DNA from: Octopus bimaculoides
Taxonomy: Eukaryota
Direction of reading: 5' to 3'
DNA: 64,000 nt
Assembly (NCBI RefSeq): GCF_001194135.2
Contig: NC_068987.1
Coordinates: 24,298,581 to 24,362,580 of the forward strand
Positions within the stretch are counted from its first letter, which is position 1. The number at the start of each line of letters is the position of its first letter. This document shows, one piece after another, positions 9,060-62,809 of the stretch. Made by a program: the position numbers and the translations under genes. The notes beneath the pieces are model-generated. The model saw nothing but the letters and a program-made list of their open reading frames with translations, ran no database searches and had not been told where the DNA came from.

Positions 9060-9202
9060 TTTCTCTTCACTTCCTGCTGCAAGAAATAGATTCGTTATTC
9101 TTTATTATGTGGACCTGGAAATGGAAATTAATATCTGCTGTAAAAGTTCTTTTGAAGTTATGATTGTTCCCTCTACCTCAGCTTCTCATTATTTGTGTAT
9201 GT
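9060..9202 (+). promoter_or_regulatory. Candidate ZNF2 promoter / non-coding exon 1
   Basis: cacttcctg (ETS-like) near 9068; tctcattattt motif shared with the other exon-1 blocks; GTATGT donor at 9197. Weaker match than the others. Confidence 0.35.
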
Positions 9203-10317
9203 ATTACATATTCTTCATTGGATTTATATGAATACGTATTATTAATATAAGGTGGTAAACACCAGTTTACATACATGCGTTTGTTTTGTTCTCTATAGTA
9301 AAGTAAAAGAAAGAGAAGAAAGTGTATCATTTACGAAAGTAAAATATTTTTGTTTAAAGTAAAGATGATTTTGTTACTTTTTTTCCACTCCATTCCTAAT
9401 TTTCCGAATTCCAAGCTAAAGCCCGAATTCCCACATTATCGCTTGACCTGCTAGAAATAACAACTAGATCGCATCCTCATTAAAAAAGTGAAATACGTTT
9501 CATTATATAGTCGGCAAACATTTGATCGCCATATAGTCTTGGTTTGATACAGTATACCTAAAAAGGACGGCTGAAATGACTTTAATTCCTTTGATGCTTA
9601 GGTTGTGCGAGCAGAAGTGACCAAGTGCTAAAAAAAAGAATGAAACATTGGACAAAATAATTTTCATGCGATCTTTGTATTCAAAGTATACCACTTACAG
9701 TTTTGTTACTGAAAGTGTCACATCCCGGAGATAATGATCCAAAACAATCGTTGACTCGATTGCAGAATAGATTCGACATTTCATATAACGCTTCGAGGAT
9801 TTTATCATTTATTTTTTTACCACGCGGCTATGCAAACATTTAAAAAAAGTTTATGATTTTTTTTTTCACACAATCACCCCTGCCCTCTCCTCCTCACCCA
9901 ATCCAGACCGATTTGGGGCGATTTCTTTTTTGCCTTATGCACTTTAAAACGATTGGCGAAGCCATTTCGGAAAATATTTTAGATGAAAACGTATACCAAA
10001 TATACCATCATATCACGTGCAATAAAGAAGGACTGTTTGTTTTAGTTTCATCGAGTTAAAACGAAGGATTACCGGAAACGATTCTAATATTCCAAATATT
10101 AATTTTAAAAATGTGTACACCTTGAGAATTTTTAATGAAATTATATAAGGTGACCTACGTGATTGTCTGGTTGATAATCTATAATATCCACACTGTATCT
10201 TTTCTCTGTAGATATTTTCTCTCTCTTGCTTTTTGTCTATCTTTCAATATTTCTGATTTAGTATCGTCTCTCTAACACACTTTGCGTTGACTTATAATAG
10301 CCTTTTATATATTATGC

Positions 10318-10340
10318 TGTCCCTATGTTTCAGGATATCT
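10318..10340 (+). other. Predicted splice acceptor of the ZNF2 coding exon (TTTCAG|G, exon from 10334)
   Basis: tgtccctatgtttcag|gatatctgg aligns with the acceptors of ZNF3-7. Confidence 0.6.
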
Positions 10341-10854
10341 GGTAATATTGATGTGACAATTTCCCCACAGAAGACACATCAGCAGATCAATGAAGTATCT
10401 GGAAAACTAAAGAATGACTTCATGAGGATAACATGATAGAGGTCTTCTAACTTGAAATTGACTGGAAGTGTATGTTCTGGCTTGATTATGTATGGTTGAA
10501 CTCAAGAAATTTAATAGAAAGCATCACCAGCCTTATGTGTAATGTCTAAGGTATCTGGGTGTACTTTGAGAACTGGATCAAATTCCATCATGTGTGACAG
10601 GATTGGATTTAATTTAAAAATTATAATTAAGGAGAATGACTTTTATCTGAAAAGAGTATATGAGATATAACTATAAAAAATATTCCAAATCTTAATTTAT
10701 ATTAATCCCTAAAAATAATGTGTATCTTCATAAATTCCTGCCCAGTAATCTAACCTCTTAATCGCAGTATCACTTTGCTTTATAAAACATTGAATTTAAA
10801 AAAAAAAAAAAAAGAAAAATATAAAGAAGGAATTCTGTTTGTATTCTGTGAGGA

Positions 10855-12048
10855 ATGAATGACATTATGGAAGAGAGACTGAGTGAGAGTGAGGAAATAC
10901 AATATGAGAATAATGATTTTCCTCAACCAGATAAAAAAGGTATGCAGATGAAATCATATGGCTGTGACATCAGTGCAAACCCCTTCATGAATATTAAGGA
11001 CACCAGTGAACACAATTTACTTGATACAAAATCAAATGTTTACCACTGTAAATTTTGTGATAAAGATTTTACTACATGTAGTTCTTTGCTATCACACAAA
11101 TGTATTCACACAGATGAGAAAACATTTCTCTGTGATATCTGTGGTAAAATTTTCTCTTGTAAGGATGACTTGACTGTTCACAAATGTACACAGACAAGTA
11201 AGAAAACATTCAACTGTGATGTCTGTGGGAAAATGTTTTATAAGAATTATGATTTAACTCGTCATGTACGTATTCACACAGGTGAAAAACCATTCCGCTG
11301 TGATATCTGTGGTAAAACATTTTGCCAGCAGTCTCAATTAAATGTTCACATACGTACTCACACAGGTGAGAAACCATATCATTGTGATATCTGTGGTAAA
11401 ACATTCTCTACAAATACTTTAATTCGTCACATACGTACTCACACAGGTGAGAAACCATACCACTGTGATAACTGTGGCAAATCATTTTCTCGAAATTATA
11501 AATTGATGAGTCACAAATGTACTCAGGCTAATGAGAAGCTACACTCCTGTGATGTCTGTGGTAAAACATTCTCTCAGAATTCTGTCTTAGTTCATCACAT
11601 GCGTATTCACACAGGTGAGAAACCTTACCACTGTGATATCTGTGGCAAAAAATTTTCTGCAAGTTCTCACTTAACTCGTCATGTACGTACTCACACAGGT
11701 GAGAAACCCTACCACTGTGATATCTGTGGCAAAGCATTCTTTTGTAATAGTGAATTGACTATACACATATTTAGTCATACAGGTGAGAAACCACATAATT
11801 GTGTTATCTGTAGTAAAACATTTACTACAAAATTTCACTTAACTCGTCACACACGAACTCACACAGGTGAAAAACCATACCATTGTGATATATGTGATAA
11901 ATCATTTTCCACAAATTATCAGTTAACTGTTCACAAATGTTCTTACATGAGTGCGAATGCATACTACTGTGGTATCTGTGGTAAAACATTTTACCGACAT
12001 GGAGATTTCACTATTCACAAGCGTACTCATACAGGTGAAAGTATATAA
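10855..12048 (+). CDS. C2H2 zinc-finger protein ZNF2 (397 aa, 12 fingers, 3 lacking the last His)
   Basis: Intact ORF; acidic N-terminus of about 60 aa, then a finger array with TGEKP linkers. Confidence 0.93.
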   Translation: MNDIMEERLSESEEIQYENNDFPQPDKKGMQMKSYGCDISANPFMNIKDTSEHNLLDTKSNVYHCKFCDKDFTTCSSLLSHKCIHTDEKTFLCDICGKIFSCKDDLTVHKCTQTSKKTFNCDVCGKMFYKNYDLTRHVRIHTGEKPFRCDICGKTFCQQSQLNVHIRTHTGEKPYHCDICGKTFSTNTLIRHIRTHTGEKPYHCDNCGKSFSRNYKLMSHKCTQANEKLHSCDVCGKTFSQNSVLVHHMRIHTGEKPYHCDICGKKFSASSHLTRHVRTHTGEKPYHCDICGKAFFCNSELTIHIFSHTGEKPHNCVICSKTFTTKFHLTRHTRTHTGEKPYHCDICDKSFSTNYQLTVHKCSYMSANAYYCGICGKTFYRHGDFTIHKRTHTGESI

Positions 12049-17299: not shown

Positions 17300-17427
17300 T
17301 TGAAGCTTCACTTATTCGTTTCGGTAATTCAGAGGAGCATTGTACTTTTTTGCAAACCCCATTGTCGTTGGTCCCAATTTTAATAACACCGTTTTCTTCC
17401 TCTTATCCCACATTTCTTTATGTAAGC
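17300..17427 (+). other. Predicted ZNF3 non-coding exon 1 with donor GTAAGC at 17422
   Basis: ttat|gtaagcatcatttatat...aaatttctctttta aligns with the donor blocks at 29303, 38254, 52074 (minus) and 53778. Exon start uncertain. Confidence 0.5.
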
Positions 17428-18440
17428 ATCATTTATATATATTTTTACATATTTCTTATCGAGAAAATTTCTCTTTTAAATTTATTATTCTACTTCATCT
17501 GCATAATTCCTTCTCCTTGCAATAACCTGTTTTCTTTCGTCTTTATTTTTGCTTGTTTTCGTTTTCTCTGATTTTTCTCTTCATTTAAACTCCAGTTAAT
17601 ATTGTTTTCAAGGAGTAACGGCATTCTTTCGATATAGATATTTTGAGTATATTTTTGTTCTATTTCTTTAACCATGTTTTTTACTCTTGTTTTTATTCTG
17701 TAGTCCTCTCGAGGACTGATAGGCAGAAGTGTTGACTAAGAGAAAGAAGTTTAGATGTTTTACGAAATAGCGGCTAGACCCTACTTATTCTCATTACATG
17801 TGATTTGCCTAAAGTAAACCTAATCGGTTAATGTTTACGTCTTCGGATGACATTTTATTGTACAAACACCTTAAATATGAACAGTGATTCCTGTTCCTTA
17901 TAGCGAAACCCATCAGTCTTAGAATCTTGGACAACTTTGTGGCGGATGCAATTCAATACCTCCAAATTTGTATTCGCGACTTTTCGTGTTGTAAAGTTTC
18001 TTGGTTTTATAATACAAACTTTCTTTTAAAGTGATCTAAATTTAAACCTTCCATCAAACTTTCGTTTTAATTCATGTTACAAACATCAGCTTAATACTGA
18101 CAGTTATTTTACTAAATTCTTCATTATTTTAAAAATTAATCGAAACAATGGCAGTGCATTTCAAGAGACATTTGGTAAAGAGAGTTAATATTATTTTAAA
18201 CAGCATAAATCCCAATGAAGTATTTGATTAAAGGAAGTCAGGCATTTACTATGTAAAAGGTAACTATGAGGATAATAGTAGTGATAATGATTGTCTATCT
18301 CCTTTCAAATGACCGGCTCATAAGTCATATGTGATTGGAGGACTGGAAGAAGACATTCGGACGGAGTCAAAGTCTTGTAGACAAGAATTATGTTATTAAA
18401 GAACAGTTTATATTCTTTGTTGGTCATCAATGTAAGTTAC

Positions 18441-19174: not shown

Positions 19175-19225
19175 TTCATTGTCCTTTATGTCTTATGTTG
19201 TCTTTTTATTTCAGGTTATCTGATG
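19175..19225 (+). other. Predicted splice acceptor of the ZNF3 coding exon (exon from 19215)
   Basis: cttcattgtcctttatgtcttatgttgtctttttatttcag|gttatctgatg, conserved among paralogues. Confidence 0.7.
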
Positions 19226-19825
19226 GTTTTAAGGTAAAAAGTTTTCACTAAAGATGATCAACATATGAAGTTTGAAGATTAAAATTAACTTCATTAAGCT
19301 ATGTCAGCCTGTTAATACAAAATCCTTGGAATTGAGATTATTTACTGTAATACCAAAACCAACAACAGAAGGAAGGCTGTAGTAACAGTATCAACAACAT
19401 ATGTAGTACTTCAGCATGACTGCAGTCCTTTTGTTACAACTACTGCTACAGTAAAATATTAATTAGACTGAAGATATAAAGACTAAAAACTTCATCAAGC
19501 TGATGTCAGCCTGTTTCTGAAACTCTTAGTTGAATGGATGTGAACTATTACCTTGGAATTGAGATTGTTTGCAAAAATTCCTACATAAATGTTTACAGGA
19601 AAATTTTCTTTATAAATTAATTTAGAAAGCTATACTGTGAACTTTTTATAATTTTATACTTTAAGAATTTCATATCTGGATTTATCTTGTTAATTGGAAC
19701 GACTTTAATGATATTTTAGTTGTTGGCTGTCACAAGATAAACTAATAAATCCCTTTGAAATGTTTTTTAACAGTTAAGACTTTACAAAGAATATCACACA
19801 GAAAATTAGATAAAAAGTAAAAGTT

Positions 19826-20803
19826 ATGAATAAAAAAGCAGAACCCCAAAATATTGATTCATCAGAAGAGAAATCACATTCTTGTGATATATGCAGAAAG
19901 TTATTCACAACAAAAAAGAATTTAATTCAACATAAATTAATCCATTCATTCTCTAATCTTCATCAGTGTGAAGTTTGTGGCAAAAGATTCACTGCAAACA
20001 ATTTATTTTCTCGCCATAAATGTAGTCATCCAGGAAAAAAACTGCACCACTGTGATATCTGTGATGAAAATTTTTCTTCAAGTGGCAGTTTATCTTCCCA
20101 CAAGCGAATTCACACAGGAGAGAAACCATACCACTGTGATATCTGTGATAAAAATTTCTCTCAGAAAGGTAATTTATCTACCCACAAGCGTATCCACACA
20201 GGGGAGAAACCATATCTTTGTGTAGTTTGTAACAAAGCCTTCTCTGATAGTCGTAGTTTATTTATCCACAAACGTATTCACACTGGAGAAAAACCATATC
20301 ACTGTGAGATCTGTACTAAATCATTTTCTACAAGGGGTCATTTAACTTGTCACATACGTATTCACTCGGGAGAGAAACCATACCACTGTGATATCTGTGG
20401 TAAAATGTTTTCTGGAAGTGGTGACTTGTCTTCCCACAAACGTATTCACACAGGGGAAAGACCCTATCACTGTGACCTGTGTGGTGAAACGTTTTCTAGA
20501 AATCGTAATTTAACTTATCACAAACGTATCCACACTGGGGAGAAACCATACCAATGTGATATATGTAATGAAGCATTTTCTACAAGGGGTCATTTGTCTT
20601 GCCACATACGTATTCATACAGGAGAAAGACCATATCACTGTGATACCTGTGGCAAGACTTTCTCTCAAAGTGGTCATTTCTCTCGACACAAACGTATTCA
20701 CACTGGTGAAAGACCATACCAGTGTGATATCTGTAATGAAAAATTTTCCAGAAGTGATAATTTAACTCAGCATAAACATATCCACACAGGAGAGAAATCA
20801 TAG
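19826..20803 (+). CDS. C2H2 zinc-finger protein ZNF3 (325 aa, 11 fingers)
   Basis: Intact ORF; aaagttATG start context shared with paralogues. Confidence 0.94.
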
Positions 20804-28984: not shown

Positions 28985-29128
28985 TTCTCTAGTGATTAAG
29001 GGGAAATTGTTCGAGTATAGAACTCTCTAGTGATTAGAGGGGAAATTGTTCGAGTATAGAACTCTCTAGTGATTAGAGGGGAAATTGTTCGAGTAAAGAA
29101 CTCTCTAGTGATTAGAGGTGAATTATTT
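28985..29128 (+). repeat. 39-bp minisatellite, about 3.5 units
   Basis: ctctag starts at 28987, 29025, 29064, 29103; unit actctctagtgattagaggggaaattgttcgagtataga. Confidence 0.95.
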
Positions 29129-48299: not shown

Positions 48300-48584
48300 G
48301 ACTTTCTCTTTAAATTTCCTGTTTTCTTTGTATATTCATAATAGAAATATATCTATATCTATATTTACTTTCCCTCTCTGATGGCCTTTACCAAAGTCTG
48401 ATGATGTCTCAGCTACTAAGAAATATTTTCCAGTAAACATTTGTGTACTTTCACAAATAATGCCAACTCCAAGGAAATATTTTACATCCATTAAACTGAA
48501 GGCTGACATTAGCTTTATAAATACATTTCTAGTCTTCAAACTTTGATCCTCTGATCCTTCAGTGATATATTTTTATCTCAATGC

Positions 48585-48645
48585 CATCAGGTAACCTGAA
48601 ATTATAACACAACATAGGATATTAGGGATAATGAAATGTTAACAA
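48585..48645 (-). other. Predicted splice acceptor of the ZNF6 coding exon (exon from 48595 downward)
   Basis: Minus strand cctatgttgtgttataatttcag|gttacctgatggcattgag. Confidence 0.7.
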
Positions 48646-48913
48646 AGGTTATTGGAGAGAGGATATTTGAGTGCAGATATTGAAAGTTAGAAGAAGCATA
48701 ATATATTTACAGGGAAAAGACACTGTGGCAGTATAAATATATGGGAGGAAATGAATAATGAAGACATTGAAAAATGACCACTGGTCACTATGACATCAAT
48801 CTCTGCAATTAATTCAGATATTTTTATAAAGATAAGAATTATCTTTCTCATCATCAGCCATTGTATACACAGATCATATGAAGGCTAAGTATAGTAACAG
48901 CTAATATACTGCA

Positions 48914-50180
48914 ATGACAGCCATGATATTTAAAGAAAAACCATATGATGAAATAATACGTGGATTAGATTTCGTCTACACCTATATTGACAATATTCTC
49001 ATCGCTAGTTCTTCTGAGAAAGAACATGAGATTCATTTGAAGCAACTTTTTGAAAGGCTTTCTCAATATAAAATTCATATGAACGCTACCAAATGTATTT
49101 TCGATGTGCCTTCTCTCACTTTCCTTGGACACACCATTGATAAGAATGGAATAAGGCCTTTGCCAGAAAAGGTTGAGGCTATAATTCCAGTTCCCATTTC
49201 ATTAAGACAGCCCAGACAATTTATCAGATTAGCTAATTATTATCGACGTTTTATACCTCATTGTGCTGAAACTTTATACTCTCTCAACAAATTACTGCAA
49301 CACCGCAAGAAGAGAACAGAAAACATTACTTTAATTCTTGCAGAAATAAAAGCTTTCAACAATATTTAACAGAAACTCTCTCATGTCACCATGTTAGCTC
49401 ACCCCATTCCTAATGCCGAAATTCCTCTTGTAGTCAACGCGTCCGAAATTGGTGCCGGCGCAGTCATTCAACAACTCCACCATGGTGAATGGCAACCTCT
49501 AACATTTTGTCTCTAAGCAGTTAAAACCAGCTGAAACTAAATATAGCACATTCAGTCGTGAACTGTTAGCTATTTACCTCTCAGTTAAACACTTCCAACA
49601 CATTTTGGAAGGAAGAAACTTCACAATATTTACGTATCATAAGCTGTTATCTTTTGTTTTACACTGCAAGCCAGATAAATTTTCCCCGAGTGACATTCAA
49701 CATTTGGATTACATTTCCCAAGTCACGAGTGATATACAATATATTCCAGGTTCTGAGGAGATTGTTGCAGATTCTTTATCCCGTTTACCTGTAAACACGT
49801 TATTTTCAACTGCAGAAATTAACTTGGACGAAATGTTGGAAGATTAACCATCCGTTGATTTGAATAATATACAACAACCAGAATTAATTCCTTTCGACCT
49901 CCAATTTTTCCCAGTTGCGACATCAAACAAACAGATCCTTTGTGATTTTTCTTCTGGTAAACCTCGCCCTTTAGTTCCTGAAAAGCATTGCCGTATCGTT
50001 TTCTCAGCACTACACAATATCTCACATCCAGGTATAACAGCAACATTGAAGCTTATTACAGCTCATTTCGTTTGGCCAAACATTCGTTGAGACATAACTA
50101 ATTGAACTTGTACCTGTGTTGATTGTCAAAAATCCAAGGTACATAAACATATATTATCACTACATAAATTGGTGACCCCT
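48914..50180 (+). mobile_element. Gypsy pol fragment: RT, RNase H, integrase H2C2 domain (frameshifted)
   Basis: YIDNILIAS, FLGHTI, YYRRFIP, ETKYSTFSRELLAIY, LHNISHPG...FVWP, CVDCQKSKVH. Confidence 0.9.
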
Positions 50181-51188
50181 AGGCAGAATTAACATTACAA
50201 TAATGAAAACAACAAAGATGTATTCATCATAAGATGTCAAACTTTAGAAACAATATCACAGTTCAAATGTAATAAATGTTTGTTATTTTTTGGGCCAATA
50301 CACATGTCTACTCCTTTTGGTAGTCTGAGTTTGTGAAGTTGTGTGTAAAGGACATGTTTGTAATGCTGTGTGTGTGTGTTGTCTGTAGTGGGGTTGGAAA
50401 TAGTTTTTTCTATGCGAGCCCTTTTTAGTCTGTCAACAGAAATAGTGCCTTTACAACCATTAAGGTCTAAAGTGAAAACTCTATCTGCGTAAGAAAGCAC
50501 ACGCAAAGGTCCTGCATACGGTGCTGTTAAAGGATGTTTAATGGCATCGTTACAAACAAAAACATGAGTCCAGGATGAATAGTCTTTAGGCAAATATGTA
50601 TTAATGTCTTGTTTTCTGGTGTTCATATGTGGTAACTTTGACATATAATCACACAAGCGTTCAACGAAATTTGTAGTGTCGATATCTTGTGTGTTTGCAA
50701 GAACAATCATCTGACCGGGCAGTGTCAAGGAAGAACCATAAAGTAATTCTGCAGGAGAATATCCAATATCTTCATTGATAGAAGAGCGGAGACCCAAGAG
50801 AACAATAGGAAGAAATTCAATCCATAGAGATGAATCAGCAGAAGCACACAACACAGCTCTAAGCTGTCGGTGAAATCTTTCGATCATACCATTCGAAGCT
50901 GGGTGGTAACTAGTTGAATGGATGTGTTTACTTCCTAAAATCTTCGTTAGTTCCTGGAAGAGTTTAGCTTCAAATTGACGTCCGCGATCTGTTGTTATTT
51001 TAACAGGTGTTCCGAAACGAGAAATCCATCCTGTGACTAAAGCTTGTGCCACAGTTCGAGAAGAGATGTCTGTGAGTGGAATGACTTCTGGCCAGCGTGA
51101 AAAACGATCAATACAAGTTAATAAAAACGTGTAGCCCTGACTTCCAGGCCAAGGTCCTACTACATCAACATGTATGTGCTGGAATCGT
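50181..51188 (-). mobile_element. Gypsy integrase core and 3' region, inverted relative to the RT part
   Basis: [56 protein letters not shown]. Confidence 0.9.
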
Positions 51189-51286
51189 NNNNNNNNNNGT
51201 TTGTCGTCTGTTTTAGGGTTAGTGTTGGGGAAAAAAGTCAAAATTGAAGAAGTTGGGGGGAGGGGGGAAATTTGCACAATGCCGAT

Positions 51287-51378
51287 TTTTGGCAATCTTC
51301 CGGAACCTCCGTATCCGAAAACGGGGATTTTTGGCAATCTTCCGGAACCTCCGTATCCGAAAACGGGGATTTTTGGCA
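51287..51378 (+). repeat. 42-bp tandem repeat, about 2.2 units
   Basis: gatttttggcaatcttccggaacctccgtatccgaaaacggg twice, plus a partial unit. Confidence 0.92.
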
Positions 51379-52068
51379 AAACAAAAAAAAAATTACAAAA
51401 ATAAACAAATTTGGGAGAAAATGGGGGTGGGAGACGGGCAGAATTCTTTCCAAAATATATTTTATGTAATAAATATACAGTTCCTAAATTTATTCTTCTC
51501 TGTAAGAATTCCTATAAGATACATGCAGCTTTTCTAAACATATATTCACACTACAAAATCATTTATAAAATATTGGAAAGATAAAGTTTTCTGAAACTAT
51601 TTACTACAAATTTGAAACACTGCTAATAATACATCTGAATGTCTCAGTAACAGCAAGAAGCCGAAAACCCGAACACCCCAGTTACTGGATAGCTAGGAAA
51701 ATGGGGTTAACCATTTAACTGGAGCAACGACATAGAAATACTTGTTATTTACAAAACGAAATGTAAACATTGTTTGCGATGATGGGGAATAAAACTGAAC
51801 AACAAAAACGACCTGGATAAAATATAATACATGAGAGCTAACCCCTTGCGTGTTATTTTAAAATAAAATACATTTTCTGAAAACTAGATTAACTTACGGA
51901 TTTTAAAAGAATTAGAAAAACGTGAAAGAATGAAATAAAGTAATAATGAAGAGATAAAAAAAAAAAACAGGATCTTGAAGGGAGCAAGAATGGTGTAGAT
52001 GAAGTATGAATGTAAATATATAATAGAGATTTTGTATAAAAGAAACGTGTTAATTATATATAAATGAT

Positions 52069-52322
52069 ACTTACATAACTACTATGATGAGGACATTGAT
52101 AGACTGAGCAGAACTTCCAACTTTTCTTACAAAATATCTCTATTGTCTTCTTCTGGTTGATGAAAAATCTCATAAGTTTATTACAGGAGTTGATTAATTA
52201 TTACTAATAAAGTGTAAAGAAATAATGTAACTGTAATGTTTACGTATTTAATGAGGTGTGCGGTTGACATACCGGAAGTGACATTGGATTGTGTGGTAAG
52301 AACTTACCTCAAATCAATAGAG
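52069..52322 (-). promoter_or_regulatory. Predicted ZNF6 promoter and non-coding exon 1 (donor G at 52074)
   Basis: Minus strand ctctatTGATTTGAGGtaagttctt...cACTTCCGGtatgtcaac...catcaaccagaagaagacaatagagata...gttat|GTAAGTatcattt. Confidence 0.72.
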
Positions 52323-53474: not shown

Positions 53475-53783
53475 CTCTCAGCTGTTTAGAGGCAAGTTCT
53501 TCTAATCAGTGACACTTCCGGTATGTTAACCTCCACACTTAAGTCTATAAACAATGTTGATATATTATTCTTTCTTTACACATATGTACAGTGTGAGTAA
53601 TAACTAATTAATTTCTGTAGTTAACTTAAGAGATTGTTCATTAACCAGAAGACAATAGAGATAGTCTATATGTAGTAGTTGAAAGTTCTGCTCAATCTAT
53701 CTATTTTCTCTTCTATTTCCAAATCATCACTACTTCACTACATCTCTCATTATTTCATCTTATAACTACATTGTTTTGTAAGT
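53475..53783 (+). promoter_or_regulatory. Predicted ZNF7 promoter and non-coding exon 1 (donor GTAAGT at 53778)
   Basis: ctctcagcTGTTTAGAGGcaagttctt, ACTTCCGG 53514-53521, cattaaccagaagacaatagagata, ctctcattatttcatc. Confidence 0.72.
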
Positions 53784-53944
53784 ATCATTCATAAAGATTT
53801 TACAGTTAATATATATTTGTCTCTTTTAAAAATCTTTGCTTTATATTTACAGTTTTTAATTTGTCTATCCTATTCTTGTTTCTTACAAAAATCTATTTCA
53901 TTCTTTAATTTCCATACATTGATTTAGTTTACACGAAATTTTTT

Positions 53945-53979
<35 letters not shown>

Positions 53980-54480
53980 TCTGTTTCAATCCCCTCCTTT
54001 ATTTTTTTTATCCCCGTTATTTATTCTTACTCTACGTCATTATTCAGTGTCCCCTTCAACAACATAGTTTTTCACACTGTCACAATTTTTGTCAGAGACC
54101 CAATCGCTACATTTCCGAGGGATCAGGTGATAACATGGTCAGTTAATTTATAGTGTATTGTTACACATCATTTTTGGATAATTGGAAATGTAAAGTCTTT
54201 TACCGGTGTTCCAATAAAACTGGAAACCGATCAAGTGCACTGAAACAAAACCTGTGGGTAAATATGGATGGAAAATCACTGTGCAGTGGGGGAATGCATA
54301 AACGTATCGTGGTTTATTTGAAATATCATAACGAAAACAATATTTTCTGGCGATCTTTGGCATTAAGTACATATAACTGCGGAATGGATAAATCGAGGAA
54401 AGTACAAGAATTAGTCTTGGGTATCTTGAGTAAATGAAACGAATGTGTAAATGCTTAGAAGTTATTACTATAGATTTCTC

Positions 54481-54700
54481 TAAGGCAGCGAGTTGGTAGA
54501 ATTGCAAGCACGTCGGACAAAATGCTGAATGGCATTTCGTCCGACTCTTTATGTTCGAAATTCTACCGAGATCAACTTCACCTTTTATTCTTTTTTGGTC
54601 GCTAAAGTAAGTTCCAGTTGAACACAGGAGTCGATGTAAGCGACAAACCCTCTGTAAAATTACTGGCCTTGTACCTTAATTTGAAACTATTACAGATTTT
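54481..54700 (+). mobile_element. SINE family B, diverged
   Basis: taaggcagcgagttggtagaatt...gttcgaaattctaccgagatcaacttcacctttt. Confidence 0.65.
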
Positions 54701-55428
54701 TTTTTGTTTTGTAATAATGCACGCACCACCAGCCTATATATGCATGCATCTATTTGATTGGACAGACACATCCTCATTCATAAATTTCCCTACTGTAAAA
54801 TTTCAAGTAATATTTTTGTTTACATTTTGAAATGATTTTACGACCTGCAACTTCTCTCCCTCTCTCTTTCTCTCTCTCATGCACGCACACACATATTTCT
54901 CATAAATATTTTCTTTTCTCTGATGATAACTTCAAAACTACAGTAGTATTTTTAGTAACTAACTTCTAAGCAAATACATATTCATTTTGTTTACTTGTGA
55001 TACCCAAGTCTATTTTTGTACTTTCCTTCAGATCCAGTTTGATTTAGATTTTTAAAACATTTTTATTTTGTTTTTACTTCAGGAAGGGCAAGGTACTTTC
55101 ATCTTAAAAGTTATCCATTATGAATAATGGACCTTCAGTGAGCTACATCTCACAACAAACCAGGACAAAATCAAATGCAAAAAAGGCTATAATTTTAAAG
55201 AAAAGTAATTGCATTTCATTTATTTGCTATAATTCTCTCCTACTAACTTTTGATCTTAAATATATTGTGGATCCAGTTGAAATAATGGGAACGTCATACT
55301 AGTTGCTTATCAGTAACTCAGCTGACACTGCAATGTTCAGTCTTTTATTGACTTTCATTGTTGAATATTTCTGTTACTTAATATTTTCATTTGCACTCAG
55401 GAAATAAAATTTTGACAGAATAAAAGTA

Positions 55429-58291
55429 CCATATTTTAACATGTATAAGGAACCCTTTTTTGTCAAAAATTAGGTTAAAAAAATATAGGAGTTTCTTCTA
55501 CATGGATAGTATTATAGATATTAATAAATTACTTAATTGCTCGAACCTCAAATCTCTATGACTTAAACATCGCAAGCCTCAGACCAACACCCAACAGGTT
55601 GTGACGTCCTATTGGATGAGTTGCTATCCATTCGTCAAGCAACGGCATGCGCCTAAAGCAGCCATCACAAACGGCAATTGTCTGCCAAACAGTACTTACT
55701 TATGCTCACCGAGACTGTTAAATCCGTATTTTTGTATTAACATGACAGTTCTGTATTGTATTTAAAATTGCGAGTGAACACGCAAGTGCGAACATTAACA
55801 CTTTCTAAAAAACCCAGGCTGCTTATGGAGGTCATACAACCTATCAGAGACAGTAAGCCTGCTCAATAGCCATATATGACAATGCAGCTCACACTGAAAC
55901 AGGCATGAATGTAGCATAACCAAATATGGAAATTCAACTGAGACACACTCTTAGGTATTGTCTACTGTTATTTGAATTGATCCTGCATTACTCTTTTTAT
56001 AGATTTTTGTTTTCTATTAGCATAAAAATGTCTGAGAATAAAAAGTACATTTCATATCCTGCAAATTTCAAATTGAAAGTGATTCAGTTTGTAGAGGAGC
56101 ATGGAGATAAAGCTGCAGCAAGACAGTTTGAGCCTCCTCTTATGACTACCATGATTGGACTGTGGATAAAAGCACAAAGATGAACTTTTACAGATGCCAA
56201 GGATGAAGAGAGCAGCATGAGGCAAAAAGGCAAGGTGGCCAAATCTGGAGAGAAAACTCAAACACTGGGTCGAAAGCTGAAGGCAAACTGATGCATTTGT
56301 TTTGACAAAGATTCTAATCAATCAAGGAAGAAAAATTGCTCAGGAGATAAAAAGAACAAAGAGGAAGGGCAAGAGACAACTGATTTTAAAGGCATGCCCA
56401 TCTGGTGCTTCTGTTTTATGAAGAGGAATGGTTTAAATCTAAGGACTAGAACCAAGCTTGTTCAGAAGATGCTTGATGCTTATGAAGAAAAGATTCCTAA
56501 GTTTCATTCTTATATCATTAATTTACACAAGAATACCAACTTTGAACTTTGCCACATAGCAAATATGGATGAATTTCCATTTACCTTTGATGTTCCTTCC
56601 AACAAAACTGTGAATCAAAAAAAGGCTAAAACAGTGGCCATCAAGACAAGTGGACATGAGAAGACTCATTACACAGTTGTCCTGGCATACTGTACTGATG
56701 GTACCCAGCTGCCACCAATACTCATTTTCAAAAGAAAGACACTTCCAAAGGAGAAACTGCCAGAAGGAGTTCTTGTGCATGTTCATGCAATGGGCTGGAT
56801 GGATCAAGATGTTATGAAGATTTGGAGTAAGAGACCTGGGAACCTTTTTAAGAAGCCATCTACGCTGGTGTTAGATCAGTTCAGGGCACTTATAACTGAT
56901 ACAACATAAAAATTGGCAAAAGAAAAAATCAAAAACCCAATTGGCAGTTATTCCTGGTGGCCTGACAAGCCAACTTCAACCTCTGGACATCAGTAACAAC
57001 AAACCATTCAAGTGAAGTTTGGCTACGCGAAGAATTCGTGGAACGGTATGAAGAAAGAAGTGATTGTAAATGCCTTTAAAACGTGCGACATAAGCAACAA
57101 CATGGATGGTACAGAGGATAATGCAATTTACAATGAGGGTGACTCTGATGATAATGAACTACCAGTAGTTGTATCTGATTATGATGTATTAGATGAGAGT
57201 GATGAGGAATTTAATGGTTTCTATGATTAATAAAAAATATTTTTGATAAAACTTGTTAACTTGTGAAGATATTTATTAATATTCTTCTTAAGGGTATTTT
57301 ACAGTAAATTTTGATAAGTGCACCTGCACACATTTCACTAAGAAAAAAAAAAACCTTGGATTTTTTGCATGGAATCAAGTACCCTGACCTCCTAATGTGT
57401 CGCAATCCCCTTATTTTTTGGTCGGAAAAAAGTGGGGTTGGGAACCCTCCTTCTCATCCCGGAATCATTGGAAATTAATTTTTTTCATTGAATGAATTAC
57501 AGTGACCTTCTAATATGCTACAAAACACTTTTTGTTCTGAAAACGGAGGGTGGGGTGGAACTCTCAGAAATTTCAACCCCAACCCCAACATTTTACAGAA
57601 ATATGTTTTCAAGAGTGTAGATTACATAAAATTGAAAGTTTAAACAACTTTGAAAAGAATTGAAAATGCTGAAGTTATAGAAATTAGTGGTAACGACAAG
57701 AATGTATCCCCTGGAGAACTTTTGTGTTAGTGTGAAACAAGTAAAAGTATGATATTAAAACAAAATATCTTTTTCATACCTCTTAAAATCACTAGATATA
57801 TTAATCCCAGATTGCAGAATATATTCAAATGGTATCGAGTGTTTTATATATAAAAATAAAAAAATTCACTTTCTCTTTGCAAGTTTTCCCACCTGAAACT
57901 CGAATCGAGATTGAGAGAATTAGTTTTCTCTTTGTACTAAGAATCGATTTAAAATAACTATATCTTAAATGTTGTGTGAGGAAAGAAGTATATTCTAATG
58001 GGAAAATATTGTATCTTTTAAAAGCATCCAGAATTTACTATGCATTTGTTTGTGTGTGTTTATCATTTAAGATATTTTTAATTTCATTTATGTGTCTCCT
58101 TTCTTTCAAAGAAGGCCTTCTTTCTTTCTTACCATATCCATAGTCTCTCATCTCTCTCTCCCCACACAAAGATGAAATGCATTACCCGATAAGTGCGGCT
58201 GCACTTATCAGAATTTACCTAATCTCTTACAAATGCTTTTTTAAGCCTGCAAAATTTGGGGGTTCCTTATACACGAGGGTTTTTTATACAG
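55429..58291 (+). mobile_element. pogo-superfamily DNA transposon, decayed, with imperfect TIRs and TA flanks
   Basis: TA-ccatattttaacatgtataaggaaccc at the left; gggttccttatacacgag...atacag-TA at the right; transposase relic inside. Probably contains a secondary insertion at about 57340-58170. Confidence 0.65.
56028..57230 (+). pseudogene. pogo transposase pseudogene (Brinker-like DBD, CENP-B-type HTH, DDE_1)
   Basis: YPANFKLKVIQFVEEHGDKAAARQF; IANMDEFPFTFDVP; GHEKTHYTVVLA; LPPILIFK; GWMD; LVLDQFRA; VIPGGLTSQLQPLDIS.NKPFK; acidic tail; several stops and frameshifts. Confidence 0.88.
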
Positions 58292-58785
58292 TAATTCATT
58301 TATTGACAGTAAAGTAAAATGGCACATAGTAGTGTGAAGTAGAATGAGGCAACCTTTTTTTAGCAGCAGGTTTTATGAGATGTTGCTGATTTTCATTTCA
58401 TTATCATCATCTTAATGTCCATTTCACCACACTTGCATAAGCTAGACAGAATTTGTTGAAGTAGATTTTCAATGGCTGGATGGCCTTCCTATCACCAAAC
58501 CTTATTTTCAAGTAAGTTAATAATTTCCTAGTCTTTTCAACAGTGCACAACCTGGATGAAGTTATGTAGTGAACTGGAAACAAACTATACCATTTGAATG
58601 GCTCTTTTGTTTACAAAGATCACATAACATGTCAAACAAGTCTACACATTCTTTTGTGATGGATTGCAAGCAAAGGACACTATTGACAGCAAGATTTTCA
58701 TTTACAGTCAACAAATCTACATGAACATGAGGGGAAATATGAACTCACACAAATGTACACAGAAGTATATCGTCCTATCTATTTA

Positions 58786-59040
58786 TCATCATCGTCCTCA
58801 TTTAATGTCCATTGTCCATGCTGGCATGGGTTGGATAGTTTGACCAGGGCTGGCAGGCTGGCGAACTGCACCTGACGCCAGTCTGATTTGGCATGGTTTC
58901 TTTGGATGAATGTCCTTCCTAATGCAAACCACTTTATAGAGTGTGCTGGGTGCGTTTATGTGTAGCCACACGGGCGTTATTTCACAGTCCTGCATGGGCA
59001 GGCTTTTACATGGCACTGCCATGAGTGCTTTACACCACCA
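58786..59040 (-). mobile_element. RTE-type 3' end, diverged
   Basis: catcatcgtcctcatttaatgtccattgtccatgctggcatgggttgg. Confidence 0.7.
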
Positions 59041-60079
59041 GAAGTATTGGTCTTAGCATTTCTACTGCAGAGTATGGGTCCTATTGAGTATGGCAAGATG
59101 CCAGGCATTTCAGTCCTTTGTCATCCCGCCTAAAAGATTCAATGTCCCGAGGTTGTTCCTCAGTACTCCATCCTATGTCTTCCACATATATATATATGAC
59201 AGGCTTCTTAAGTTTCTGTCTGATAATTTCACTTATAAAGCTATAGTATGAAATGTTAGCCAATAACATTTATGCAGTAGGACCAAACCATTGACTACAT
59301 GGTTCCGCATCATAGCTTTTAACCATACAGTCAAGCCTTTATAATACAAATTAACACTATACACCATACTAAGCAAGTTAAAATTTGAGAGAAAATGTGA
59401 GTGGATGTAAGAGAAATGAACTTGTGTAAAGAACAGCAGGTTGTACATGCCTGTCACATGAGAGTTGGCTACTAGTTACTTTCTGAAATCTTCTTTGAAC
59501 AGTCAGATGTCAGTTTATCTGAAAAGAAACAATGCAATTATTAATAAGAAGAGTTGAAATTGATGCATACACGATTTCACAGATCTAGTATAACGCCTTC
59601 ATAATCAGCTTATGAACTTTTTAGCCCACCCTCATATAGCTCTCAGTTTCATGTTTTTGTGATTATATTCATTAGGTAATGGAAATATGGCTTATTTACT
59701 ATCAAAGTGTATTAGATATTAATAGAGGCATGTTAAAGTAGTTGACAACAAAAAAAAGGGACATACAAATATCACATTCTATCTTCTCCTAGGTGTGGTG
59801 AAGATATGAAGCTCACTGAATATCTATATCCTGTAGATAAACTGTCTTGTGCAAGTAAGGTGGCCAGCAGTATAAATTGGCATCAGAAATTATCATGACC
59901 TTTATGACCTACTGCTGTGATGTACTTGCAGAGCAATTTATTTAAAATGGTAGCATTGGTGTCACTATTTGAAACTCATTAGTGTGATTTTGTCATGTGT
60001 AAGCACAATGTAGGCCATTTAATGAAAATTCACTGGGGGCTAGGGGATGTTGAATTTGATTCTAGGCAGTGCTTTCTGT

Positions 60080-60250
60080 CACCGTTGTCGTCATTTAACG
60101 TCTGCTTTCTATGCTGGCATGGGTTAGATGGTTTGACTGAGGACTGACAAGCCAGGTGGCTGCACTAGGCTCCCATCGGATTTGGCAAAGTTTCTACGGC
60201 TGGATGCCCTTCCTAACACCAACCACTCCGAGAATGTAGTGGGTGTTTTT
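60080..60250 (-). mobile_element. RTE-type 3' end
   Basis: catttaacgtctgctttctatgctggcatgggttag...ggatgcccttcctaacaccaaccactccgag. Confidence 0.78.
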
Positions 60251-61268
60251 TTATGAAAGGGTAACCAGAGTGGGTGGTGGGTATTTTGTTTGGATAACCA
60301 ATCTGGTCATAAAGAAAGAAAACCACACTGCACATAAATACATAAAAAGTATGTATGTTTACAGTTTTTGTCATTCAGTCTAAAGAGTGTGTACAAACAC
60401 TGGATAATACTTAAACCTTCTTTATAACTTACAAATAAAATTACATTTTGAGTATAAATAATAAAAATATGGAACTCTAGAATTCAAAGAAAAATGGCTT
60501 AACTACAAAAAATAATTTCATATATTCAGGAAGTTTACAGAATTCATCAAACAATTTATATAGATATAATTCAATGAGGTGGATGCTGGTTGTTATTTAA
60601 TGGAGGAAATATCCAGTCACTGTTGCTAATGTGCTTGTGTTTCTTTGTTTCTACCAGCAATTATATTTGAAAAAAGATGCATCAACTTAATGGCATTGGC
60701 TTTGTTTACTGCTTCATGCCACTCCATCAAATGTCATAAGCCATTGAAAGTTTTGTTAATGGGACTGGAAGAGGTTTTGATATTTAATTATCTTTATCAT
60801 CCACAGCATCTCTTCTTAGCTTGATTTTCTTATTAATGGTCCAAATGAAGTAATCCATTATGATGTGCATATATCTTTTTGTTTGCTTTGATCATGTGGA
60901 AGACAAAGATTTTAGGATGTTCTGGTAATTTTCTGTACAGCAAGCTATAATACCTAGAGTATCTCCATTTCAAGGTCTACATCAATAATCCTTATCACAT
61001 CTCTGGACTAAAAGTCTTTTCTTTGTAAACATCTTCTGACTCTTTCTTGCTATTCTAACTTTCTAAGAATATCTGAATGATATGCAAAGATTGATGTCTT
61101 AGTGATCTGCAGTCATTTTTTAATGCTATCATTCCTCAATCCATAACCATAGTCCTCGTTCATTTCCTCTATATTTCTACACCAAAGTACCTTCTCTCTG
61201 ATTCGTTCTTGCTATTCTAACTTTCAGTATCTGTGGTCAAATATATTCTCTCCAATAATCTTCATGTT

Positions 61269-61325
61269 AACACTTCATTGTCCCTTATGTCCTATGTTGT
61301 TTTTTTTATTTCAGGTTATTTGATG
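61269..61325 (+). other. Predicted splice acceptor of the ZNF7 coding exon (exon from 61315)
   Basis: acacttcattgtcccttatgtcctatgttgttttttttatttcag|gttatttgatgacattgag. Confidence 0.72.
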
Positions 61326-61723
61326 ACATTGAGATAAAAATAATTCACTGAAGAAGATCGACTTTTGAAACTGTAGCTTCATCAAGCTGATATCAGCCTG
61401 TTTCAACAACTCTTATTTGAAAGGATGTAAAATATTTCTTTGGAATTGAGATTATTTGCAAGAATTCCTACATTGTGGGGAAATTTTGTGGAAACATTAA
61501 GTTTATCAGATTTACCACAAGGTTTCAACTGACTTATTCGTAAGGGCTTTAATGTCTGGGTATATCTTGTCAACTGAAGCTAGTTTAATGATCTTATAGC
61601 TGCTGATTATTAATTACAAAATTCTATCCTTTTAAATCCACTTTAAGTTACTTTGAACACCCAAGACATCTTCAGTCTTTAATAAAGATCATCTACGTGC
61701 TAAATATAGATTAAAGTGAAGTT

Positions 61724-62809
61724 ATGGATGAGAAAGCACAACCTGAAATTACTGATTCATCTATTCAAATAAAGGGAAATAGAAGGGAAAAATCATACCC
61801 TTGTGATGTATGTGGGGAGGTATACACAACAAGAAGTAATTTAATGCAACACAAATTAATCCATGCAACCTCCAAGGTGCACTACTGTGAAGTTTGTGGT
61901 AAAGGATTCACTCGCAACAGTTTATTGACTCGCCATAAGCATATACATACAAGAGAAAGGCCATACCACTGTGATATCTGTGGTGAAAAATTTTCTAGAA
62001 GTGCTCATTTGTCTAGACACAGGCATATTCACACAGGAGAAAAACCATATCCCTGTGATGTCTGTGGTAAAACATTCTCTCAAAGTGGTACACTATCCAC
62101 TCATAAACATATTCATACAGGAGAGAAACCATATCAGTGTGATATCTGTGATGACAGATTTTCTACAAGGGGTCAATTGTCTAACCACAAACGTATCCAC
62201 ACTGGAGAAAGACCCTACCAATGTGATATTTGTAGTAAAACATTTTCTAGAAGTGGTCATTTGTCTTCCCATAAACTTATCCACACAGGTGAAAGGCCAT
62301 ACCAATGTGATATCTGTGATAAAACATTTTCTCGAAGTGGTGATTTGTCTTCTCACAAACATATTCACTCAGGAGAAAGACCATACCACTGTGATATCTG
62401 TGGTACGACATTCTCTCAAAGTGGTAGTTTATCTCAGCACAAACGTATTCACACTGGAGAAAAGCCCTATCAGTGTGATATCTGTGATAAAACATTTTCA
62501 ACAAAGAGTCATTTATCTTCCCACATACGTACTCACACAGGAGAAAGGCCCTACCATTGTGATATCTGTGGTAAAACATTCACTCAAAGTGGTAGTTTAT
62601 CTCAGCACAAACCTATTCACACAGGAGAGAGACCATACAATTGTGATATTTGTGGCAAAACCTTTTCTACAACTCGTAATTTAACTCGACACAAACGTAT
62701 TCACACAGAAGAGAAAGCATACCACTGTGATATTTGTGATGAAGCATTTTCTACAAGAGGTCGTTTATCTTCCCACATACGTATTCATACAGGAGAAAGA
62801 CCATCATAG
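61724..62809 (+). CDS. C2H2 zinc-finger protein ZNF7 (361 aa, 12 fingers)
   Basis: Intact ORF; gaagttATGG start context. Confidence 0.94.
   Translation: MDEKAQPEITDSSIQIKGNRREKSYPCDVCGEVYTTRSNLMQHKLIHATSKVHYCEVCGKGFTRNSLLTRHKHIHTRERPYHCDICGEKFSRSAHLSRHRHIHTGEKPYPCDVCGKTFSQSGTLSTHKHIHTGEKPYQCDICDDRFSTRGQLSNHKRIHTGERPYQCDICSKTFSRSGHLSSHKLIHTGERPYQCDICDKTFSRSGDLSSHKHIHSGERPYHCDICGTTFSQSGSLSQHKRIHTGEKPYQCDICDKTFSTKSHLSSHIRTHTGERPYHCDICGKTFTQSGSLSQHKPIHTGERPYNCDICGKTFSTTRNLTRHKRIHTEEKAYHCDICDEAFSTRGRLSSHIRIHTGERPS

Follow-up and report, generated by a model that had tools for sequence, protein, structure and literature searches.

Mammalian KRAB-ZNF genes lie in tandem clusters, with one or more 5' non-coding exons and all of the fingers in one large 3' exon. 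The variable exons of clustered vertebrate protocadherins each have their own promoter with a conserved sequence element (CSE), and this element is the basis of promoter choice. The ZNF expansion of cephalopods was independent of the vertebrate ZNF expansions. The KZNF architecture is likewise stated in PMC10547256, which also describes the FiNZ genes (FZNF) of zebrafish chromosome 4 as hundreds of clustered, recently amplified C2H2 genes. According to the same paper, which cites Hadzhiev et al. (2019, 2023), a ‘sharp peak’ subset of the FZNF genes has in common a distinct promoter architecture that includes a clear TATA box, and its members are expressed together in a developmental wave. The cephalopod C2H2 literature covers phylogeny and co-expression, but not cis-regulatory sequence (PMC12513265, PMC9068888); paralogues from one expansion are reported to be often in different co-expression modules (PMC12513265).

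We analysed a 64,000-nucleotide stretch of the Octopus bimaculoides genome (the window), which contains the ZNF genes that we call A to F. These genes resemble KRAB-ZNF genes in their tandem clusters, their predicted 5' non-coding exon and the placement of the fingers in one large 3' exon. However, the whole octopus protein is encoded in one exon, whereas KRAB-A/B coding exons are separate. As in the FZNF genes, the promoter appears to have been copied along with the gene in tandem amplification. Unlike those genes, where the FiNZ domain is on a separate coding exon, the octopus exon 1 is non-coding and there is no recognisable effector domain; the octopus motifs, CTCTA-N5-TAGAG and an ETS site, differ from those described for zebrafish. 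As in the clustered protocadherins, each unit of a tandem array has its own promoter and one short conserved element. In contrast, protocadherin variable exons are joined by splicing to a common set of constant exons and their CSE is a CTCF site, whereas the octopus units are complete genes that give no indication of stochastic choice or CTCF involvement.

Organization and distribution of the cassette

An earlier note on this DNA had claimed that non-coding blocks recur once per gene. Searches of the window and of the whole assembly recovered two block families, a promoter/exon 1 block and an acceptor/leader block, and the same blocks were found independently by self-BLAST of the window and by profile searches. 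Blocks and ZNF ORFs are matched one-to-one, with order and strand fixed, and each ZNF ORF is one uninterrupted exon, as the note had said. The recurrent cassette is confirmed as real. Genes D, E and F are intact, gene C is decayed and gene B is without promoter and exon 1:

37966..37983, plus strand: gene D upstream element, CTCTCCAATGATTAGAGG; homology among all of the paralogues has its 5' edge here
38010..38017, plus strand: gene D ETS-type site, ACTTCCGG, 26 nt past the upstream element
38037..38045, plus strand: gene D TATA-like element, CTATAAACA; putative transcription start ~30 nt on, at ~38069
38070..38253, plus strand: gene D predicted non-coding exon 1, with a putative 5' end
38135–38162, plus strand: gene D exon motif, CATTAACCAGAAGACGACAATAGAGATA, within predicted exon 1
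38254..39638, plus strand: gene D predicted intron, GC-AG, donor GCAAGTAT, acceptor TTTCAG, gap-free
39639..41068, plus strand: gene D exon 2, 428-nt leader; the stop codon ends at 41068
ATG at 40067 (aagttATGg), plus strand: gene D ORF, nine-finger C2H2
53475..53777, plus strand: gene F promoter and exon 1 block; upstream element 53475–53492, ETS-type site 53514–53521
53545–53553 and 53639–53663, plus strand: gene F TATA-like element and exon motif
53778..61314, plus strand: gene F predicted intron, GT-AG, 7.5 kb, gap-free
61315..62809, plus strand: gene F exon 2, 409-nt leader, ATG 61724, 12-finger ORF
52075..52322, minus strand: gene E promoter and exon 1 block; upstream element 52322–52307, ETS-type site 52279–52272
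52162–52135, minus strand: gene E exon motif
48596..52074, minus strand: gene E predicted intron; donor GTAAGTAT at 52074–52067, acceptor AG at 48597–48596
47016..48595, minus strand: gene E exon 2, 296-nt leader, ATG 48299 (aagtcATGg), 14-finger ORF
28986..29302, plus strand: gene C decayed promoter and exon 1, with ~72 nt of exon 1 deleted
29303..32141, plus strand: gene C predicted intron, GT-AG, of uncertain length, spanning the gap 29810–30441
32142..33190, plus strand: gene C exon 2, ATG 32528, five-finger ORF of 236 codons stop to stop
17417..17522, plus strand: gene B relic, reduced to the donor GTAAGC at 17422 and its intron flank of ~100 nt
19215..20803, plus strand: gene B exon 2, acceptor 19214|19215, ATG 19826, 11 fingers
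10334..12048, plus strand: gene A exon 2, acceptor 10333|10334, ATG 10855 or 10867, eight fingers

No N falls within cassette D (37966–41068) or cassette F (53475–62809). Assembly gaps interrupt the introns of C (29810–30441) and E (10 N at 51189–51198), which depend on the scaffold for their length and linkage. Apart from the gap 8584–8927, taken up below for gene A, the remaining gaps in the window are intergenic. The intron of F is enlarged because transposon fragments have inserted into it (a DDE_1 ORF at 56292–56909 and SINE-like sequences at 58785–58962 and 60088–60250), and that of E holds fragments of a reverse transcriptase (RT, 48905–49369) and an integrase (50237–51187). In gene B, profile search found no promoter/exon 1 homology upstream of 17417, and the leader has an insertion with a partial duplication, such that 19152–19269 and 19490–19583 both match the block. 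The acceptor block of gene A is divergent (138 bits). Profile search of the window did not find the promoter of this gene; that promoter may lie inside the gap 8584–8927. The donor tentatively placed at 9197 by the earlier note was dropped, as the profile had no match there even at E ≤ 10. The promoters of E and F are head-to-head, 1.15 kb apart. An inverted duplication of these two genes was rejected: the inverted repeat between them consists of the two TIRs of a MITE-like transposon, of which there are at least 565 candidate copies, and the 290 nt adjoining each promoter do not align.

Both blocks are low-copy in the 2.34-Gb assembly. The promoter/exon 1 block occurs at ~31 places (34 matches with a consensus query; a single-copy query gave 13 matches) and the acceptor/leader block gives 29 matches, nearly all copies of both being within two ZNF clusters. 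They define a clade of ~30 genes, chiefly in the assembly intervals C7:24.27–24.49 Mb and C1:55.66–55.74 Mb. Genome-wide, a C2H2 ORF lies 3' of the acceptor block at every testable locus (27/28 loci). Pairing was quantified in 278 kb of sequence. In it, 25 of the 29 ZNF ORFs are preceded at a distance of 116–384 nt by a co-oriented acceptor block. Wherever sequence is covered, a promoter block of the same orientation is present another 0.9–7.5 kb upstream of the acceptor block; partners missing from pairs were supplied by the genome-wide consensus search. The composite of the upstream motif, 18–40 nt and ACTTCCG was present twice in the window against none expected (100 shuffles), and 11 times genome-wide against one for the reversed control. 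Copy counts overstate the support because paralogues are non-independent observations. What the earlier note called ‘the family’ is this one clade and not the whole ZNF family of the genome, in which a single-protein query gave at least 8,206 candidate ZNF matches. That the clade shares one regulatory input, as the note had inferred, is conjectural; cephalopod C2H2 paralogues of a common expansion are often reported from different co-expression modules (PMC12513265).

A transposable element or dispersed repeat that lies near ZNF genes by chance might also give rise to a promoter/exon 1 block, a case that the earlier note had itself listed as refuting its claim. The window is indeed repeat-rich, and one of its repeats carries a promoter with a double ETS site and a TATA (26500–26560, minus strand). 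However, the ~31 promoter blocks, nearly all in the two ZNF clusters, invariably precede a ZNF ORF in the same orientation, and no terminal repeats were seen. With the same tool, true repeats of the window gave at least 142 and at least 565 candidates on all chromosomes, as opposed to the ~31 and 29 ZNF-linked places of the two blocks. Thus, the blocks are non-dispersed and the repeat reading is largely refuted; we consider it extremely improbable.

Conservation of splice and promoter signals

Identity among 13 paralogues varied along the unit:

upstream flank: 0.38 (shuffled 0.37)
promoter: 0.56
exon 1: 0.69
intron flanks: 0.59–0.60, declining to 0.37
exon 2, 5' part: 0.71
4-fold sites of the same genes: 0.635
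3' flanks: 0.35–0.43

The exons (0.69–0.71) are modestly above the 4-fold sites and the intron flanks are approximately neutral. Conservation peaks at the start codon and at canonical signals for splicing. The best-conserved 8-mer is the donor TGTAAGTA (0.98, above all 5000 column permutations), and the acceptor 8-mer CAGGTTAT (0.97) is the top element of its block.

The 5' splice site matches the GTRAGT of U2-type introns: 14 of 16 copies have GTAAGTAT, the exceptions being gene D (GCAAGT) and a single copy with GTAATT. The 3' splice site likewise has the YAG, pyrimidine tract, YTRAY and AG-exclusion zone of this class. Its CAG is kept in 24/24 copies, the zone from -45 to -3 is AG-free in 19/24, pyrimidines make up 0.76 of positions -23 to -4, a YTRAY branch-point-like sequence is present in 16/24, and pyrimidine content falls from 0.73 to 0.44 across the junction. 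In the window, the predicted donors proved base-exact at 17422 (GTAAGC), 29303 (GTAAGT), 38254 (GCAAGT, a GC donor), 53778 (GTAAGT) and 52074 on the minus strand (GTAAGT), as did the TTTCAG|G acceptors at 10333, 19214, 32141, 39638, 61314 and, on the minus strand, 48596. The exon motif was also found where it had been placed (29241, 38135, 53639 and, on the minus strand, 52162). These signals suggest that the intron is spliced as drawn. A genome search for a retrocopy with the exon 1|exon 2 junction returned none, a negative that is not decisive. A second small leader intron (GTAAGG … AACAG|CCAAGAC) was rejected; no more than 2/24 copies have both of its signals, and conservation of these is poor.

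Could the blocks be functionless leftovers of duplication that have not yet decayed, with GT, AG and ETS site inherited without selection? The 4-fold sites are still 0.635 identical, so neutral DNA may not have been fully randomized, and the intron flanks are about as similar. However, DNA of equal age just upstream of the block and past the stop codons has reached the shuffled baseline (0.35–0.43), conservation is focused on splice and start signals far beyond column permutations, and the blocks are still recognisable between the C7 and C1 clusters. We regard the leftover explanation as very unlikely and favour purifying selection on the core signals.

The promoter has a regular order: CTCTcTA·TGaTtAGAGG, ~27 nt, ACTTCCG(G) and then a TATA-like element. 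The upstream element, noted earlier as CTCT..TG(A/T)TT(A/T)GAGG, is at 29101, 37966, 53475 and, on the minus strand, 52322–52307, with extra copies at 29023 and 29062; gene C has a 39-bp x3.5 tandem array (28986–29122) with three full copies of it. Its family consensus is CTCTcTA.TGaTtAGAGG, in which the arms CTCTA-N5-TAGAG form an inverted repeat. Homology between paralogues begins sharply at this element. Two promoter elements are conserved, ACTCTCTA (P=0.002) and TTAGAGGT (P=0.01).

ACTTCCGG follows the upstream element by 26 nt (D), 21 nt (F) and 27 nt (E), as had been reported, and is degenerate in gene C (TTATTTCC, 29143–29150). Among 16 copies, nine have ACTTCCGG and five ACTTCCG(C/T), and the CTTCCG core is kept in 14 at regular spacing. 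The site has, at the sequence level, the core GGAA in CCGGAAGT-like flanks that marks ETS sites, although at 0.85 its core is conserved only marginally more than the block as a whole (mean 0.755; uncorrected P=0.048). About half of the copies carry the TATA-like CTATAAACA, 19–30 nt past the ETS site, and its distance from that site is fixed among these copies; conservation of this element is not significant (P=0.11). Transcription would start downstream of this element. Like TSS-proximal ETS sites of the CCGGAAGT class, of which ACTTCCGG is the reverse complement, the octopus site would lie ~50–60 nt above the transcription start; some ETS proteins bind ≤60 nt from TSSs (PMC5358759). Unlike the TATA-less or housekeeping promoters of that class, it is joined by a TATA-like element and a subfamily-specific upstream palindrome.

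The two upstream sites would be bound by ETS-family proteins and by another, possibly dimeric, factor. We also considered the speculative and quite unlikely idea that CTCTA-N5-TAGAG is a cluster-specific control site whose binder is a dimeric factor or a ZNF encoded by the cluster. If so, the ~30 genes could be switched, silenced or chosen jointly or singly, and the site would be functionally akin to the protocadherin CSE or to auto-targeting in KZNF clusters, but in a cephalopod.

Leaders, start context and encoded proteins

The start context AAGTTATG is among the top 8-mers (0.89). The aagtYATG described earlier is present in B, D, E and F, but gene C has aagcTATG and gene A a variant. The leader portion of exon 2 is 300–615 nt long, and the predicted leaders, at 490–620 nt, contain 5–13 upstream ATGs, approximately the number expected by chance. 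Such undepleted upstream ATGs are unusual for an efficiently translated mRNA, and a second transcription start near the ATG is therefore possible.

We accordingly weighed a model in which the main promoter is near the ATG and gives mostly unspliced mRNAs, while the upstream block is a minor or alternative first exon or is enhancer-like. Besides the long leaders, this model could account for the renewed rise in conservation over the final ~60 nt upstream of the ATG and for gene B, whose ORF and leader are intact despite the loss of promoter and exon 1. However, it has difficulty explaining the acceptor (0.97), its AG-exclusion zone and its pyrimidine tract if these are unused; the donor is the top conserved element of the upstream block (0.98), and no TATA, Inr or ETS site is conserved near the ATG in a 24-copy alignment. 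We consider a main promoter near the ATG unlikely, and favour the upstream block as the promoter.

No structured cis-regulatory RNA was found in the leader: RNAalifold, applied to the conserved 5' part of exon 2 from 14 copies, gave 0 pairs and 0 kcal/mol, and Rfam had no match in the window. The protein has a 25-residue acidic N-terminus before the first finger, followed by 5–17 fingers. Pfam searches of genes E and F returned C2H2-type finger families only, with no KRAB, SCAN or BTB domain, and exon 1 is non-coding relative to the ZNF ORF; thus, the effector domain on a separate coding exon that characterizes KRAB-, SCAN-, BTB- and FiNZ-type genes is not found here. Searches of the protein collection gave neither close relatives nor records derived from transcripts. 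The exact sequences of four window proteins were absent from it, and a homology search with the N-terminus only had no match; the full-length search was swamped by generic poly-ZNF proteins.

The duplicated unit

Recent duplicates have sequence in common beyond the block, upstream of it. Therefore, the duplicated unit was at least the whole transcription unit, in agreement with the earlier note. In older pairs, the sharp block edges appear to be the limit of constraint. The blocks, their subfamily specificity, their order and strand and their conservation profile are observed directly. We think it likely that the block set is the transcription unit of a young C2H2 subfamily, propagated by whole-unit tandem duplication with its core signals under purifying selection.

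Based on these results, we propose a model of the unit. It would begin with a compact promoter, consisting of the upstream element, the ETS-type site and, in about half of the copies, the TATA-like element. A non-coding exon 1 of ~190 nt would end ..TTAT|GTAAGTAT and be followed by a U2-type intron of 1.0–7.5 kb, the interior of which would be freely remodelled by transposons. A large exon would start TTTCAG|GTTATCTGATGAC, run through the leader to aagtYATG and encode the entire protein. Whole-gene tandem (segmental) duplication would have copied this unit complete. Neutral parts would then have decayed or given way to other sequence, with purifying selection preserving the core promoter, the two splice sites and parts of the leader.

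The cassette pattern is the ordinary outcome to be expected of whole-gene tandem duplication, in which duplicates keep their promoter and leader exon, and it overturns nothing. For annotation, it predicts that ~30 ZNF genes have a first exon that is non-coding, lies 1–7.5 kb upstream and is missed by ab initio gene finders, and it fixes where their promoters and TSSs should be sought. In addition, it offers a candidate promoter grammar for one cephalopod C2H2 clade (palindromic element, ETS site and TATA-like element) that can be tested by mutation. With respect to evolution, core promoter, splice sites and start context were retained in the duplicates, whereas intron interiors, 3' flanks and upstream DNA were turned over, largely by transposons.

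Zinc-finger genes and the blocks that accompany them

The window is AT-rich (~35% GC over 64 kb), includes eight runs of N and corresponds to C7:24,298,581-24,362,580 in a gap-rich assembly of 2.34 Gb and 145,327 contigs, whose large contigs with matches are numbered up to C30. The octopus Hi-C-scaffolded shotgun assembly has N = 30 chromosomes, and ~1,800 octopus C2H2 genes can be inferred from the phrase '165, or 9% of the total' (PMC9068888). All ZNF ORFs listed in the window (7/7) are C2H2 zinc-finger ORFs. In genes E and F, Pfam gave finger families only, with no KRAB, SCAN or BTB domain. Long imperfect (TA/CA)-rich microsatellites at 23826-24224 and 987-1084 give rise to long but spurious ORFs in every frame.

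An unbiased self-comparison of the window recovered two block families, the same two that an earlier note had described. One is the promoter/exon 1 block (upstream element, ETS-type site, TATA-like element, predicted non-coding exon 1 and donor). The other is the acceptor block (TTTCAG|G and the leader before the ATG), which lies upstream of each ORF.

C2H2 ORFs (ORF scan) and promoter/exon 1 blocks (window self-comparison)
1-930, +, unnamed C2H2 ORF, cut by window start
10852-12048, +, gene A C2H2 ORF
19814-20803, +, gene B C2H2 ORF
32480-33190, +, gene C C2H2 ORF
39947-41068, +, gene D C2H2 ORF
47016-48335, −, gene E C2H2 ORF
61715-62809, +, gene F C2H2 ORF
37966-38360, +, promoter/exon 1 block, gene D
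52323-51963, −, promoter/exon 1 block, gene E
53475-53758, +, promoter/exon 1 block, gene F
17418-17610, promoter/exon 1 block fragment
29293-29346, promoter/exon 1 block fragment

A motif search confirmed all motif positions given in the earlier note, and inspection of the sequence showed its donor and acceptor coordinates to be correct to the single base; the gene D donor is a GC donor (GCAAGT). The gene A donor that it had placed 'possibly' at 9197 is without support, as no promoter block is detectable there. The composite of upstream element, 18-40 nt and ACTTCCG occurs twice in the window compared with 0 in 100 shuffles, and 11 times genome-wide compared with 1 for a reversed control.

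The earlier note had itself raised the possibility that the blocks are a dispersed repeat. Searched against the whole assembly, the acceptor block gave 29 matches; the promoter block gave 13 when gene D was the query and 34, at ~31 places, when the family consensus was used. Nearly all block matches fall at C7:24.27-24.49 Mb and C1:55.66-55.74 Mb; the few others are singletons or lie on unplaced contigs. Each of the 27 testable acceptor loci precedes a C2H2 ORF, and these ORFs have their N-terminus in common (M·EKAEPENIDSS·Q·QENTEEKSHPCDICGKLFT); a 28th locus, a 266-bp contig, is outside this set. In 278 kb examined, 25/29 ZNF ORFs have an acceptor block 116-384 nt upstream on the same strand, with a promoter block another 0.9-7.5 kb upstream, also on the same strand, wherever that set had sequence; partners outside it were supplied by the consensus search of the assembly. 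By comparison, for two true repeats of the window the same search tool found candidates on every chromosome, at least 142 for one and at least 565 for the other. This difference between few, ZNF-linked copies and widely scattered ones largely rules out a dispersed repeat and indicates that the promoter and acceptor blocks are parts of genes.

Predicted splice signals, promoter elements and leader

Segment identities were computed among 13 paralogues.

Segment identities
Flank upstream of block, 0.38 (0.37 in shuffled controls)
Promoter portion, 0.56
Putative exon 1, 0.69
Intron, first 130 nt, 0.60, then falling to 0.37
Intron, last 200 nt, 0.59
Exon 2 start, 0.71
Remainder of leader, 0.54-0.60
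4-fold degenerate sites of these paralogues, 0.635
DNA 3' of stop codons, 0.35-0.43

Judged by these identities, constraint on the blocks as wholes is only mild, and the signal sits in particular columns. Among 8-mers, conservation is highest in the donor TGTAAGTA, whose 0.98 exceeds all 5000 column permutations; next come the acceptor CAGGTTAT at 0.97, the pyrimidine tract of the acceptor at 0.90 and, at 0.89, the start context AAGTTATG. CAG is present at the acceptor in 24/24 copies, and the preceding 43 nt are AG-free in 19/24. The mean AG count before the acceptor is 0.21, compared with 1.0 further upstream and 2.0-2.6 in the exon, and pyrimidine content is 0.73 before the junction but 0.44 after it. 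Taken together, the conserved donor and acceptor, the exclusion of AG and the pyrimidine drop are the marks expected of a U2-type intron that is in use. No retrocopy preserving the exon 1|exon 2 junction was found in a genome search. A second small intron in the leader was rejected, as it is kept in only 2/24 copies.

The block measures ~350 nt, of which the promoter part takes up ~120 nt. Homology in the promoter part has a sharp start at aaCTCTcTA·TGaTtAGAGGta, and CTCT is present in 16/16 copies. The upstream element contains an inverted repeat, with CTCTA and TAGAG as arms and a 5-nt spacer. Mostly 27-28 nt further on comes ACTTCCG(G), whose core is found in 14/16 copies; TSS-proximal ETS sites are well documented (PMC5358759). 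About half of the copies have a TATA-like CTATAAACA 19-30 nt after the ETS-type site. TSSs are predicted near 38069 (gene D), 53577 (gene F) and 52213 (−, gene E). Compared with random column sets, ACTCTCTA (P = 0.002) and TTAGAGGT (P = 0.01) are conserved, conservation of the ETS core is marginal (P = 0.048, uncorrected) and the TATA-like element is not distinct (P = 0.11). Recent duplicates are alike even upstream of the element. Thus, the duplicated unit is larger than the block, which bears out the proposal that the full transcription unit was duplicated, and the sharp edge in older pairs marks the limit of constraint, not a recurrent breakpoint.

The predicted leaders are 490-620 nt long and carry 5-13 upstream ATGs, about the chance number. 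Additionally, the predicted splice makes an ATG (..TTAT|G..) in 8/13 paralogues, opening a uORF of 10-24 codons (junctions analysed for this include 38253|39639 and 52075|48595(−)). This uATG load and the splice-made uORF leave room for an extra TSS closer to the ATG, or for control at the level of translation. Neither conserved RNA structure in the leader nor any Rfam match in the window was found. Most copies also have a 3-6-codon uORF beginning at CTGATGAC.

Extent of the cassette

The cassette is real, and we consider it rather likely that the architecture proposed in the earlier note, with its predicted splicing, is the best explanation. Its scope is narrower than 'the family' of that note. 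The distinctive N-terminus has at least 51 genome matches, of which the ~30 strongest coincide with block-bearing genes, and a first-pass search gave at least 8,206 ZNF candidates genome-wide; the cassette thus marks one clade of ~30 genes. It is what tandem duplication ordinarily produces when whole transcription units are copied, and it is confined to these ~30 genes. In cephalopod C2H2 expansions, paralogues of one expansion are often in different co-expression modules, in a study without promoter analysis (PMC12513265). Given this and the restriction to one clade, 'one regulatory input' is best treated as a hypothesis for the block-bearing clade only.

The nearest known parallel is the FiNZ-ZNF array on zebrafish chromosome 4, a subset of which shares a distinct TATA-box promoter architecture (PMC10547256). 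Mammalian KZNF genes are similar in having 5' exons and one finger exon, but differ in that they have coding KRAB exons. In the cephalopod literature searched, we found neither the cassette nor its motifs described. Exact composite matches outside the known clusters lie at C28:15708440-15708493(−), where the inter-motif sequence also resembles the family consensus, and at C1:97291248-97291291(+).

Individual genes and neighbouring repeats

Genes D and F have complete cassettes free of assembly gaps, and gene E has a complete cassette whose intron spans a 10-N gap. RVT_1 reverse-transcriptase (48905-49369, +) and rve integrase (50237-51187, −) fragments in the gene E intron, and a DDE_1 transposase fragment (56292-56909, +) in that of gene F, account for much of the length of these introns. 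Genes D and F share ~640 nt (68%; 41451-42093 and 63341-63975) beginning about 400-530 nt downstream of their stop codons; across the family, 3' flanks show baseline identity. The D/F stretch may be a 3' UTR common to both genes, or the flank of a closer D/F relationship.

In gene C, the ETS site is degenerate, ~72 nt of exon 1 are deleted, the ORF is short with 5 fingers and the intron spans the assembly gap 29810-30441; its upstream element is triplicated by a 39-bp x3.5 tandem array (28986-29122, 96% match). Gene B keeps only the donor and ~100 nt of intron flank from its promoter/exon 1 block; its promoter and exon 1 have thus been either lost or replaced. Its leader has a ~200-nt insertion followed by a duplicated leader piece (19152-19269 and 19490-19583), and the paralogue at C7:24267410 has a similar insertion (GAAGGCTGT.GTAAC…) at the same place.

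The acceptor block of gene A is divergent, and its promoter block is not detectable in the window; the gap 8584-8927 could hide it. The gap flanks (8438-8511 and 8928-9002) are inverted copies, 92% over 75 nt, which points to either an artefact of assembly or a hairpin-like repeat where the promoter is expected. The window-start ORF continues beyond a 10-N gap to ~1540. It and gene A have fingers of another subtype (HCDICGKTFS·N·LT·H·R·HTGEKP), and their 3' flanks are 71% identical (1076-1756 and 11697-12398).

The unit at 26500-26560 (−; query 26300-26680) is compact and promoter-like: it has two more ACTTCCGG sites, spaced 26 nt apart, together with a TGACGT half-site and, 12 nt downstream, TATATAAAGG. 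It belongs to the repeat with at least 142 candidates (76-88% identity, all chromosomes), has no homology to the ZNF cassette and probably represents the end of a transposable element that carries its promoter. The inverted pair between genes E and F (52612-52767 and 52998-53176) is the terminal inverted repeats of a MITE-like DNA transposon, with at least 565 candidates genome-wide, typically inverted pairs 0.3-2.7 kb apart. Its arms share a 60-nt core (98% identity) with GCGCATGC (NRF-1-like) and ATTTGCAT (octamer).

SINE-like dispersed repeat, eight window copies
2197-2452
13836-14078
16662-16930
18650-18820
34066-34356
44908-45073
58785-58962
60088-60250

These copies (~160-260 nt, both strands, 72-94% identity) are located in introns and intergenic DNA.
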